DNA of 64,000 nucleotides from Oopsacas minuta (Eukaryota; Animalia; Porifera). The notes under the pieces are model-generated. The model ran no database searches. It saw only the letters and a list, made by a program, of their open reading frames with translations, and was not told the DNA's origin. Location: positions 94,076-158,075 of the forward strand of contig JAKMXF010000356.1 in NCBI GenBank assembly GCA_024704765.1, read 5' to 3'. The position numbers were made by a program, and so were the translations under genes. This document shows positions 36,538-49,585 of this stretch, one piece after another (the first letter of the stretch is position 1; the number at the start of each line of letters is the position of its first letter).

Positions 36538-38241
36538 TCAATATCTCACTGGCTGACCAGATCTCTGCCCATCCCTCTTCCTCACAGGGGGTACAGATCT
36601 GGAGTTGCTGGGCTTGCTACCAGATGACCCCTTCTTCTCTGCACGGATGCTGCTCCCTTGGATATTGAAAGTTTTTTTATCTATGACCTGGTTAACCTGA
36701 TCCTCTGATGAGAACCCAACAAATCCATAACCGTTAGGATGTATTTTAACATCTGTAACGATACCATAGGGTCTAAAGCATTCCAGCAGATCCTCACTGC
36801 GACATTCTTTAGGGAGACCTCCTACAAATATCTGGAATTGCTCCCTCGGGCCTCTATTATCCATCTCAGAACTAGCTTTAGGTCTATACTGCCCCATGGG
36901 GGGTCCTCCTGATCTTGTGTCTCGCCCAGCAACGGCACTGGGAGCCTGGAATGCAGGCTTCTTCTTAGTCACATAATTCCTCCTATAAAACCAGTAATTG
37001 ATTGGTTGAATAAATGAATAAATGTATATATCTACTTACGCGGTAGTGAACCTTGGTTCTGACACCTTATTAACACCAGGGGGTACATGTTTGGAGGATA
37101 TGGAGGCGTAACTCATGTTCCTCTGTCCCTCCGAGGGGTCTCTCACCTGATGATCGGGGACTGTGAGCGGTTCATGTTGATCAGGCTCAATGTCTAACAG
37201 AATAGTTATTTAGTGTATATATGCTATTTGTTTGTTTGTTTGTTGTTTGTTTGTTTACCTTCATCTGGATTTACAGCTGTCTGCTCAACAACAACACCAG
37301 AGATCTCTCCTGTCCCATCTGGATACTCCACTGGACCTACAAGCAATAAGCTGAATTCCATTAGAGTATTTCGGTTGCTAGGGTATAACTACCATTTTGA
37401 GTCTCGCATATTTCGTCTGCATCCATTGACCAATCATTAATCAGCTCTGTGTCTGGTAGATTCATTGGTTGACTACCAGCAGGGACGGATGGAATGTCAG
37501 GTTTATTATCATCCTGCTCTGTGATTGGCTGAGTAGGTAGTGACACCTCTTGAGAGGGCAGGTCTCCATTCTGAGGGGACTGTACCTCTATCTGCTCATC
37601 AGCTGGATAAGTATTCTAAGAAGCATACCAGTCAAACACAATTGTAACTAGGGATCTTAAACTAACCTCTGGGGGTTCATCAAATAACTCTCCGTCTTCT
37701 TGGTAACGGAATATGTCAGCAACTATGCTATACTTCTTCGGACCATCTTGTGAGAGCACAAAGCTCTGAACGAACGCACGCATGGGACTGCCTCTAGTAG
37801 ACAGTTCTCCTGTCACCTAAATAACACATGAGTAATCATAGCAACATAGATGTATGTTAGGAATGTGTACCTGAATGAGGATACCATTGCCACCAGAGGG
37901 GAGGGCGTCTACCTGCTTGATAGAGGCGTGAACGTCCGAGAACCCGAGGGAGTCTACCTTCTCTTGGATTTCCTTCTGTCCAAGGGCAGGAGAGCACTTA
38001 CCCACCTCATTACTCCCGTGTATATACGCGCTCTGAGAGATGTAGAATCTAAAAGGTGTTAAATAGGTATAGTTCTATATTATAGTTCCATAACCTACCT
38101 GTGTAACTGTGAGGAGTCTGTGTGTAGCATGGTGTAGTACTGCTTAACGAAGTTTAGTGCTACTTTACAGGAATGCTCGTAAACAGCACTCATATCTGTA
38201 GAGGAGGAGGAGGAGGAGGAGTACACTGTATGGTCAGACAT
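36538..38241 (-). CDS. G3BP: G3BP/Rasputin-like stress-granule protein (NTF2-like domain plus RRM), multi-exon
   Basis: NFVKQYYTMLH, GQKEI..KV.SLGF, VTGELS..MR.FVQSFVL, DIFRYQED; RRM QIFVGGLP...GYGFVGF. Confidence 0.88.
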
Positions 38242-38558: not shown

Positions 38559-40181
38559 CTAAATAACAGCTGATACGAGTAGTCCTATCTCAGCTGGCTT
38601 TATAGGATAACACTTAAGGTCAGCTTCCTTTCTGTCAGGCTCCTTAATAAGAAATGGTACGTAAGGGTGTGAAGTTGCTAACAGTGAGTATAACTCAGTC
38701 AGCTGATCAGTTGTGACGTAATAGTAGTTTATAGGAGCAGAGAATCCATTAAAGTCTGATCTACTAGCACGCGTATATGCACCCATTTGTTCAAAGAATA
38801 ACCAATCACCTACTGACAACACAGGCAACTGTATTTCCTTCAGGATCTGGTCCAATCCGTCACAAGATGGTCCCCACAGGGAGCTCCTAAATATGCATAT
38901 AGTAAATGTGGAACTGATAACAGAGCTTCGAGTCAGTAAGTGTGATAATATGATAAACCTATGAAGGTGCTAATATGTGGACCTATCAGATTTGAGGATT
39001 ACCCAGTACTATATGTGTATATTAAAATTAACACCTATCTGAGGTCTAAATATATTATTTAATATAATTACCTGAGTACAGGAGATACAGCTGTCTTACT
39101 ATCCATGAGTTGAGGTTGCGGCTGCTGGTGATCAAACATAATACAATTGAAAGCACCATAAACCCCCTCATTCACGTAATACATTATATTTGTATTATTA
39201 TTGTTATCATCAGGAGTACACTCTCTAGATGACGTCACACTAACTGAGAGGATATGAGAACTACCCGCGAAGAACCGTCCAGGCTCTGCAATAACCTGGA
39301 TACCAGCCCAGTCGGAAAAATGTGTAGCTATAGAGGTGTTGATTACGTTAGAGATGGATTGTAGGAATGTGAGAGAGGGAGATGGGTCTAGTCCTGGGCA
39401 AGAAGGGAATCCTCCTCCTATGTCCAAGAGGGTGAATCTGTAACCGTAATTTAGACCTGAGTCAAATACCTTCCTAGCGTCACGTATAGCGGTCCTGAAG
39501 ACCTCTGCATCCATACATCCGCTACCCACATGAAATGATACGCCTACTACTCTGAGACCCAGCTGACTAGCCAGCTGTAATAGTTCTGGTATTGAGGAAA
39601 GAGGACACCCGAACTTATTGGACAACTTACAGAGGGCAGAGGAATCATCCACCTGTATCCTGAGGACTAGACAGCTGTCTGGATGATATTTAGAGTGTTT
39701 GTAGAGTTCACAGGTATTATCAAAGGTAGCAAGATTGACACCTGTAATGAAATGTGTAAACAACAATAAACACAAACAATAACAACAAACCTCTTGATTT
39801 AGCATACTGTATATGAGACAGCTGTTTACACGGATTAGCATAAATAATTGAATCAGTAGAGGACAGATTAGAGGAGCTAAGCACCCCAAGGACAGTCCTG
39901 ATCTCTCCCTTAGAGGCACAATCAAACCCAACCCCCAATCTAGCCAGTACAGACAGCATCAAGGTGTCAGGATTACATTTAACCGCATAGAAAGGCCTGA
40001 TGGAAGGGAACAGCTGTTTCCATAGCTTTACCAGCTGGGGGAGAATTCCAAGATTAATAGCAAAGAAAGGATCGTCATTTGGCGCGTGACGCGTGGTGAG
40101 AAGATGGGAGAGGATCTCCCGAGGAGGAGACCTCTCCAGGATGGAATAAATAGAATTTCCTTCGTACAGGAAGTTTGTCAT
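38559..40181 (-). CDS. ODC1: Ornithine decarboxylase, multi-exon, catalytic residues intact
   Basis: PFYAVKCN (PLP lysine), GFDCAS, YANPCK, VSFHVGSG, LDIGGGF, EPGRF and WGPSCDG (catalytic Cys). Confidence 0.93.
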
Positions 40182-40338
40182 AAGGTGTGAAAATGTAATA
40201 AATGTATACAGGTATGTTAGGATCCCACTCAGGTTCTTTATTAACGTCAGGAAATGTGCATATACCTCCTGGCTCTATCAGAAATTTACGGACCTCTGAA
40301 ACGAGGCTAATTTTGTGACGTTTTCTTTTACGAAGAAT
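40075..40338 (-). promoter_or_regulatory. Putative AUU-initiated regulatory uORF (uCC-like) overlapping the ODC start out of frame
   Basis: caaaATTctt start context. Open 87 codons: ILRKRKRHKISL...EPGG...DVNKEPEWDPN..., stop at 40075-40077. Confidence 0.7.
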
Positions 40339-40867
40339 TTTGTACGGTTAAGCTACGTCCAAAGTTATTGGGCATTAACTGAGTGTTTGAAGGGCGCTAA
40401 AGGAATATGTATATAAAGGGTACACGAGGGTTATATTATACGGAGGTGAGGGGACAGATATGGTGGCTAATGTGACACCAGAGGAACAAGCAACAAAATG
40501 TTACATAAATATATTGAGAGCATAGAGTTGGTTCATTAAATAAGTAAACAAATAAACAAACAAACCTTGAGAGTAGCTTGTAGCTGTTAGAGATAAATAT
40601 AAACAAACAGATTATACAAATCTAGTAAACAAGTTCTAATATACAAAATAATGAAATATTGATAAACAATAATCTTATGTACATACACGTACTTCCCATG
40701 CTGTATCAAATATCAGCCTATATCACAGCAACGATATGGTAGTATGGAATGTTACGCCATGGCTGGCATAATGTGTTAGTTTCAATTATAAATCTTATAA
40801 ATGAATCTGAATTCTAAAAATAGTAACATGTATAAATAATAAAAAGAAATAAGAAAAATTAGAAATG

Positions 40868-49585
<8,718 letters not shown>

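Follow-up and report, generated by a model that had tools for sequence, protein, structure and literature searches.

Why should the messenger of a sponge ornithine decarboxylase (ODC) carry, upstream of its start codon, a long reading frame that opens with ATT and runs on past that start codon in a different register? The question is raised by a stretch of DNA from Oopsacas minuta, a glass sponge (Hexactinellida; genome paper PMC10280926). The stretch analyzed (contig JAKMXF010000356.1, positions 94,076 to 158,075) is 64,000 nt long and is called the window here; ODC and all other features described below lie on its minus strand, unless stated otherwise. The original prediction, made from this sequence alone, was that the frame resembles an upstream conserved coding region (uCC). 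Such regions sit in the leaders of ODC homologs of animals and of three fungal groups (PMC2811004). In this study, leaders of sponge ODC genes were compared, and the interpretation of the frame as uCC-like is supported at the comparative level. The frame is taken to be the hexactinellid form of the uCC of the ODC mRNA leader, with a probability of roughly 0.7.

The features of uCCs used for comparison were taken from three reviews (PMC2811004, PMC9082881, PMC8705083). A uCC starts mostly at a conserved AUU in good context, and initiation at AUU is established for AZIN1; conventional upstream open reading frames (uORFs) accompany uCCs at conserved positions (PMC2811004). Two adjacent prolines, within the motif PPW, are found near the C-terminus in "almost all examples", and animal uCCs end in Pro-Ser (PMC2811004). 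The PPW motif is a polyamine- and eIF5A-dependent pause site that drives ribosome queuing and use of the AUU (PMC9082881, PMC8705083).

Conservation of the upstream frame in glass sponges

The peptide of the Oopsacas frame starts with ILRKRKRHK and includes DVNKEPEWDPN (coordinates of this and other features are given in Table 1). The ATT is separated by 157 nt from the A of the ODC ATG (40181), and the two frames differ; the upstream frame overlaps the ODC coding sequence (CDS) out of frame for 107 nt (40181-40075). An in-frame TAA is located at 40350-40348, four codons before the ATT, and the ATT is the first near-cognate codon after this stop. The original prediction had described the ATT with A at -3, its distance from the ODC ATG, the 87 codons, both peptide segments, the position of PEW and the out-of-frame overlap, and every one of these details was confirmed.

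Two further hexactinellid loci, L003 and L004, were obtained from ENA metagenome or long-read assemblies. ODC exon 1 of these relatives is 75% and 71% identical to that of Oopsacas, and all three loci share the gene order in which a MyTH4-FERM myosin gene lies upstream of ODC. All three hexactinellids have an open ATT frame before the ODC ATG, with the common pattern I-P-RKRKR...FLIEPGG.C...DVN[KR]EPEWDPNI...FFTPYD. The peptides of the two relatives show 67-70% identity to the Oopsacas peptide, and 34 residues are invariant across the three. Indels within the leader frame measure 9, 18 and 21 nt, all multiples of three. In the blocks FLIEPGG.C and DVN.EPEWDPNI, as read from the alignment, synonymous third positions make up 10 of the 12 variable columns. 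After DPN, the frame continues for 13-46 further codons, passing through a less conserved stretch and then an invariant F-T-P-Y-D that spans the ODC AUG. The TGA that ends the frame starts 4 nt (L004), 16 nt (L003) and 103 nt (Oopsacas) past the A of the ODC ATG.

Substitution patterns were compared between the leader frame and ODC exon 1. Nonsynonymous divergence (pN) was 0.135-0.216 in the leader frame and 0.147-0.217 in ODC exon 1. Synonymous divergence (pS) was 0.33-0.47 in the leader frame, against 0.65-0.80 in ODC exon 1, where it is saturated. Since the synonymous sites of ODC exon 1 are saturated, an unconstrained leader should not be alignable among these species. A placement null was also constructed, in which the observed substitutions were scattered randomly over the same sequence and the amino-acid identity was recomputed for each frame. 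The ATT frame exceeded this null in all comparisons (P 0.01, 0.0006 and 0.0008). The other two frames gave values of 0.02-0.63, and they contain 4-9 stop-containing codons per species pair.

Related frames in demosponges

Frames of the pattern ...C...LD[VI]N.E..W..S-stop were found before ODC in Amphimedon queenslandica, in Halichondria panicea and in three species represented by Logan transcripts (L066, L068 and L070), whose ODCs are nearest to demosponge ODCs. The typical demosponge frame closes before the ODC AUG is reached, with the sequence [PA][EP]W[DE]PS-stop; the ending Pro-Ser-stop upstream of the main AUG is present in L068, L070 and Halichondria (L063). Alignment of the hexactinellid and demosponge profiles with hhalign gave a probability of 95% and E values of 2.7e-8 to 3.5e-8 over 19-20 columns. 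Five residues, C27, D31, N33, E35 and W38 in Oopsacas numbering, are invariant in seven of seven sponge sequences. On these alignments, the hexactinellid frame is judged to be homologous to the demosponge ODC leader frame. Frame conservation in relatives, on which the uCC-like interpretation had been staked, was thus found at the codon level in two other hexactinellids and as a recognizable homolog in demosponges.

The motif at the place of PPW takes the forms PEW, APW, AEW (L070) and PSW among sponges. PEW, which occurs in all three hexactinellids, had been regarded as an atypical motif. It is a real replacement of PPW; as a glass-sponge oddity it did not stand, being an ordinary sponge form beside the other three. 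The overlap with the main AUG had likewise been called atypical, and this view holds: the overlap is seen in three of three hexactinellids, whereas the demosponge frames stop upstream.

Broader searches were also performed. A DNA pattern for DVNxEPEW matched 54 times in 241 million JGI metagenome records, and none of the matches stood beside ODC. These 54 matches were rejected as uCC homologs, since no ODC was nearby, and are considered bacterial or other chance matches. Some of the records bear the label of human-gut metagenome assemblies; these were checked for ODC and then set aside, and none was taken to be human DNA. As DVNxEPEW is rare and never found beside ODC in the metagenomes, its occurrence before ODC in a demosponge is not due to chance. 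A hidden Markov model (HMM) of the hexactinellid frame was searched against 1.84 billion representative proteins, a set in which non-AUG frames are not called by gene callers; its only matches, a 3480-aa repeat protein and a TPR protein with ELDPN repeats, were dismissed as false positives. No P.W-type frame was found within 3 kb upstream of the annotated ODC ATG in Nematostella and Dysidea, where 5' exons may lie further away and the gene models may be incomplete. Amphimedon carries tandem ODC paralogs (L005 4001-6915 and 7320-10353) that are 86% identical, the second being named 'antizyme inhibitor 2-like'. The uCC-like frame of Amphimedon was seen upstream of the first paralog only.

Start codon of the frame

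The three hexactinellids, L068 and L070 all have an ATT flanked by A at -3 and C at +4, and in all of them the DP[SN] position follows 41-50 codons later. The ATT lies 49-50 codons before the stop in L068 and L070, whose peptides are alike from the ATT codon onward (I-LS-TRHPR versus I-RL-TTHPR). For Amphimedon, a hypothetical splice places an ATT in this context (A at -3, C at +4) 46 codons before the stop. The conserved ATT, the upstream stop in Oopsacas and the ATTs of the demosponges offer good comparative evidence, as distinct from a demonstration, that the frame is probably initiated at AUU.

Structure of the ODC leader

Of four sequencing runs containing this stretch, none is on record as RNA, but one (X4) was taken as RNA-derived, because it has splice joints of the GT..AG type where introns were already known, such as the ODC intron of 49 nt. 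This run provides short contigs only; the depth of these contigs is unfit for mapping of the transcription start site (TSS), and it was not used to rank gene parts. A spliced X4 contig joins 40396 to 40566 across an intron in the 5' untranslated region (UTR). This joint places the ATT at 40338 within the mRNA, on the second exon. The mature leader consists of a short non-coding first exon followed by 40396 down to 40182. The stretch from about 40610 to 40566 is free of AUG, and the TSS probably lies between about 40600 and 40690. No splice joint was found within 40396-40181 in the X4 contigs, and one contig (40188-40302) runs unbroken across the motif.

Two situations in which the frame would be absent from the mRNA, or would lose its motif, had been named beforehand. 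One was a TSS downstream of 40338, which is contradicted by the X4 contigs that join the 5' exon to 40396. The other was an intron that starts at the GT near 40265 and removes the motif; no such joint was observed, and the contig over 40188-40302 is continuous.

Companion uORFs and RNA structure

The ATT is accompanied by two short AUG-started uORFs, neither of which figured in the original prediction. The UAA of uORF1 (40330-40328) is located 8 nt past the A of the ATT and overlaps the first codons of the ATT frame, which is the +1 frame of uORF1. The AUG, length and UAA of uORF1 are the same in L003 (4801-4848) and L004 (4780-4827). Constraint on the uORF1 peptide reached P 0.03 in one hexactinellid pair and was not significant in the others. 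A mini-uORF of four codons lies within the ATT frame. Both L003 and L004 retain its ATG and TGA by way of ATT-frame codons (xTA TGC ... xCT GAC) whose third positions stay constant and whose first positions vary. Constant third positions beside varying first positions suggest that selection acts on the mini-uORF itself. The conserved short AUG uORFs probably tune the number of ribosomes that reach or bypass the AUU. The AUG of ODC itself stands in a weak context, with C at -3.

A small hairpin, CCTC-(6 nt loop)-GAGG, can be drawn at about 40294-40309, some 30 nt 3' of the ATT (columns 114-129 of the three-leader alignment A1). Its stems are invariant and its loop is variable in the three species. 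RNAalifold detected no covarying RNA structure in the three hexactinellid leaders (covariation term +0.67); the hairpin is therefore indistinguishable from conservation of the L..EV codons. A search of 39900-40900 for Rfam families at a permissive threshold gave no match.

Alternative explanations

A chance open reading frame is ruled out by the open, conserved frame in three hexactinellids and by its demosponge homologs. Several points nonetheless weigh against the identification of the frame as a uCC. The sponge frames differ from the animal ODC/AZIN1 uCC in having no diproline, with PEW, APW, AEW or PSW in its place; as it is absent, and replaced even by AEW in L070, the stall, if any, may work differently. 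The hexactinellid frames also differ in having no Pro-Ser-stop and in ending inside the ODC CDS. PPW-type frames, ending ...GGPPWDTS-stop, were found in two animal transcripts (L006 and L008), and hhalign aligned the sponge profile with these over the last seven residues only (probability 4.6%, pairwise E 0.0087); common descent with the PPW-type uCC is therefore plausible but unproven. The pS of the leader frame is lower than that of ODC, implying some constraint on the RNA itself or on overlapping frames and not on the peptide alone. The P values from the placement null are not independent, because only three hexactinellid sequences, related to each other, were available. The 5' end of the leader rests on short X4 contigs, with the TSS placed by estimate, and both the translation and the polyamine response of the sponge frames are putative. 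Some of these points would also suit a translated uORF with a conserved peptide that represses ODC constitutively or through a signal other than polyamines, its likeness to uCCs being positional only. The diproline is not kept in sponges (PE, AP, AE and PS instead), the likeness to PPW-type uCCs is limited to the seven C-terminal residues, and uCCs arose independently in several lineages (PMC2811004). This explanation is nevertheless unlikely, if deserving of attention, given the position in the leader of ODC, in which uCCs and uORFs as a rule mediate polyamine feedback (PMC2811004), and given the AUU start, the similar length and the demosponge W-[DE]-P-S-stop that are common to animal uCCs. 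In addition, eIF5A-dependent pauses are not restricted to diproline and have been reported at motifs that contain Pro, Gly, Asp or other charged residues, and at (R/K)X(R/K) (PMC5499558); the hexactinellid peptide contains several of these motif classes, which is an argument of compatibility only.

The remaining explanations concern how ribosomes enter the frame and whether the frame matters at all. Ribosomes might enter it from uORF1 rather than at the AUU, either by a +1 shift at UCG-UAA-A or by a restart coupled to termination. The uORF1 ends in UCG-UAA-A, which would put a Ser codon in the P site and a stop codon in the A site, the layout of the antizyme shift site; the three hexactinellids agree in the AUG, the length and the stop of uORF1, and this stop falls within the first four codons of the +1 frame. 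In L068, an 11-codon AUG uORF (42-77) ends with SS-UAA-A just before the ATT, the uCC frame is again +1, and the sequence around the stop is similar to that of the hexactinellid uORF (TCTTCATAAAGAA against TCTTCGTAAAAGAA). However, L070 is without an upstream AUG and the hypothetical Amphimedon leader has none in register, yet the ATT with A at -3 is retained in each of these two. Also counted against a frameshift at uORF1 were the efficiency of UAA-A in termination and the use of UGA at known antizyme sites. Moreover, neither a conserved downstream structure (RNAalifold) nor an Rfam match was found, and the chance that two lineages share the +1 relation is about 1 in 3 to 1 in 9. Entry from uORF1 is accordingly given a very low probability. 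The specific proposal that uORF1 feeds the conserved frame by a polyamine-stimulated +1 shift, as an antizyme-like frameshift sensor in the ODC leader, is given a slightly lower one; if true, the arrangement of the AUG uORF and the +1 frame in L068 would make such a leader frameshift sensor ancient in sponges. Least probable of all is an element acting as RNA or DNA, such as a structured leader or a promoter-proximal element, in which the open frame is incidental. The pS below the saturated ODC level and the small invariant hairpin 3' of the ATT would fit such an element, but the signal is specific to the frame, which has no stop in three species and indels in threes. Similarity to demosponges holds at the peptide level even where the nucleotides are not the same, and the absence of covariation and of an Rfam family argues in the same direction.

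The ODC gene and its surroundings

The identity of the ODC gene was confirmed by exon 2, which matches the identical NCBI protein 'Ornithine decarboxylase [Oopsacas minuta]' of 462 aa. When joined, the three coding exons translate exactly to P0001, the Oopsacas minuta ODC of 462 aa.

Table 1. Features of the Oopsacas ODC leader and gene (positions in the window) and related frames upstream of demosponge ODC
Feature	Position	Strand	Details	Basis
uCC-like upstream frame	40075..40338	-	87 codons + TGA (40077-40075)	sequence reading
Putative AUU start codon	40336..40338	-	context TACAAAATTCTT, A at -3, C at +4	
Conserved part of the frame	40177..40338	-	54 codons, I...TPYD	alignment of 3 hexactinellids
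Conserved peptide core	40213..40284	-	FLIEPGGICTFPDVNKEPEWDPNI	hexactinellid and demosponge comparison
P-E-W codons	40225..40233	-	CCT GAG TGG, at the place of PPW in known uCCs	sequence reading
uORF1, AUG-started	40328..40375	-	15 codons, MPNNFGRSLTVQNSS; first AUG of second exon; T at -3, weak context	
Mini-uORF	40247..40261	-	MHIS-stop, 4 codons, AUG with T at -3; embedded in ATT frame	
Non-coding first exon, 3' end	40566..40593	-	at least 28 nt	anchored by spliced X4 contig
5'UTR intron	40397..40565	-	GT (40565)..AG (40397), 169 nt	X4 spliced joint 40396/40566
ODC coding exon 1	39791..40181	-	ATG 40181-40179, context CACCTTATGAC, C at -3; identical in 3 hexactinellids	
ODC exon 2	39741-39072	-		spliced translation = P0001
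ODC intron between exons 2 and 3	39071-38887	-		spliced translation = P0001
ODC exon 3, stop included	38886-38559	-		spliced translation = P0001
Amphimedon queenslandica frame, genomic flank L005	about 330 nt before annotated ATG, likely intron between		...AICLYRDQLDVNFEPEWGDIS-stop	
Halichondria panicea frame, L063	upstream of ODC		...GLCLYREKLDVNTEAPWEPS-stop	
Logan transcript L068 frame	stop 132 nt before ODC ATG		...LDINAEPEWDPS-stop	
Logan transcript L070 frame	stop 217 nt before ODC ATG		...LDVNAEAEWEPS-stop	
Logan transcript L066 frame	upstream of ODC		...LTVNYDPSWGF-stop	

Genes on the same strand flank ODC on both sides: the MyTH4-FERM myosin gene upstream (41194-43830) and a gene with NTF2 and RRM domains (G3BP-like) downstream (36538-38241). 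An RRM gene is also found downstream of ODC in L001. A GTTTGTT(T/G)... run opens both the 5'UTR intron (40545-40565) and an ODC intron (39770-39790) on the minus strand, and L003 has a similar run at the start of its 5'UTR intron. The window has 80 copies of GTTTGTTTG on its minus strand and 28 on its plus strand. The DNA contigs of the sequencing runs break or multi-map at runs of this type, and translation of such runs gives many FVCLFVCL pseudo-ORFs.

Discussion

Understood as a uCC, the Oopsacas frame is a divergent relative of the known uCC, and it is set apart by the lack of Pro-Pro-Trp and by the run past the ODC start codon. The peculiarities of the hexactinellid form, as read from the leader alignments, are that DP[SN] has lost the stop behind it and that overlap with the ODC AUG is obligatory. 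Because this stop was lost, the end of the frame lies 4-106 nt into the ODC CDS. Reinitiation at the ODC AUG would then be closed to a ribosome translating the uCC, and translation of the uCC would be strictly repressive.

By analogy with known uCCs, the sponge frame would depend on polyamines and eIF5A. In the proposed mechanism, most scanning 40S ribosomal subunits would pass both the weak-context AUG of uORF1 and the AUU before initiating at the ODC AUG, whose context is also weak. A smaller share of the 40S subunits would initiate at the AUU, giving rise to the conserved peptide. When polyamines are high, the ribosome would pause on the conserved core ...DVNKEPEWDPN. The 40S subunits queued behind it would increase use of the AUU, as for the AZIN1 uCC, and the ODC AUG would be blocked. 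The core encoded at 40213..40284 is presumed to be the putative nascent-peptide stall determinant.

The uCC is a textbook example of a nascent-peptide pause that promotes weak upstream initiation through queuing, in which Pro-Pro-Trp and eIF5A are central. Sponges provide a natural mutational series at this motif (PEW, APW, AEW and PSW), while the Trp and the D[VI]N.E are fixed, as is the [DE]-P-S-stop of demosponges. If the sponge frames sense polyamines, such sensing does not require the diproline, and its determinant lies elsewhere in the peptide. In the glass-sponge form, the pause site is 17-50 codons away from the stop, which separates an elongation pause from termination effects, and the overlap removes reinitiation. 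The comparison points to an origin of this mode of ODC control no later than the common ancestor of glass sponges and demosponges. Orthology with the PPW-type uCC, and hence a date in early animal evolution, is unproven. No report of sponge uCCs was found in the literature covered, a scope outside which the primary uCC paper of 2008 lies, and that paper may list examples.

The arrangement in the sponge leaders recalls several known systems. As at the antizyme +1 site (UCC-UGA-U), a Ser codon and a stop end a short AUG frame, the functional frame is +1, and the gene is one under polyamine feedback. The two differ in that UAA is used here, not UGA, that no stimulatory structure was found, and that the arrangement is not universal among sponges. 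The Amphimedon frame ends with G-D-I-S-stop (L005 3660-3674), and GDIS also closes MAGDIS, the peptide of the vertebrate AdoMetDC uORF. This ending may represent convergence on a polyamine-sensitive termination context. The AdoMetDC MAGDIS uORF and the predicted overlapping uORFs of SpmSyn and SSAT (PMC2811004) are similar to the sponge frame in being cis-acting upstream frames of polyamine-pathway mRNAs, and in the overlapping ones the overlap with the main ORF prevents reinitiation; they differ in being AUG-started and unrelated in sequence. The closest counterparts of the hexactinellid frame are those of demosponges, with which it shares the core C...(L)D[VI]N.E..W, the place before ODC and an ATT start in the same context (A at -3, C at +4). 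In contrast to the hexactinellid frame, they have the stop 3-4 codons after the Trp and are without the RKRKR stretch and without the FLIEPGG block in that form.

The uCC of vertebrate AZIN1 has reportedly been studied experimentally by Ivanov, Loughran and Atkins in 2008 and by Ivanov et al. in 2018. The sponge frames share with the animal ODC/AZIN1 uCC the location in the 5' leader of an ODC homolog and a peptide conserved mainly toward its C-terminal part. At the sequence level, both have a conserved AUU with a good -3 context and no in-frame AUG. The spacing from the start to the Trp motif is about 35-45 codons in both, companion AUG uORFs stand at conserved positions, and the demosponge ending ...W-[DE]-P-S-stop matches the Pro-Ser ending of the animal uCC.

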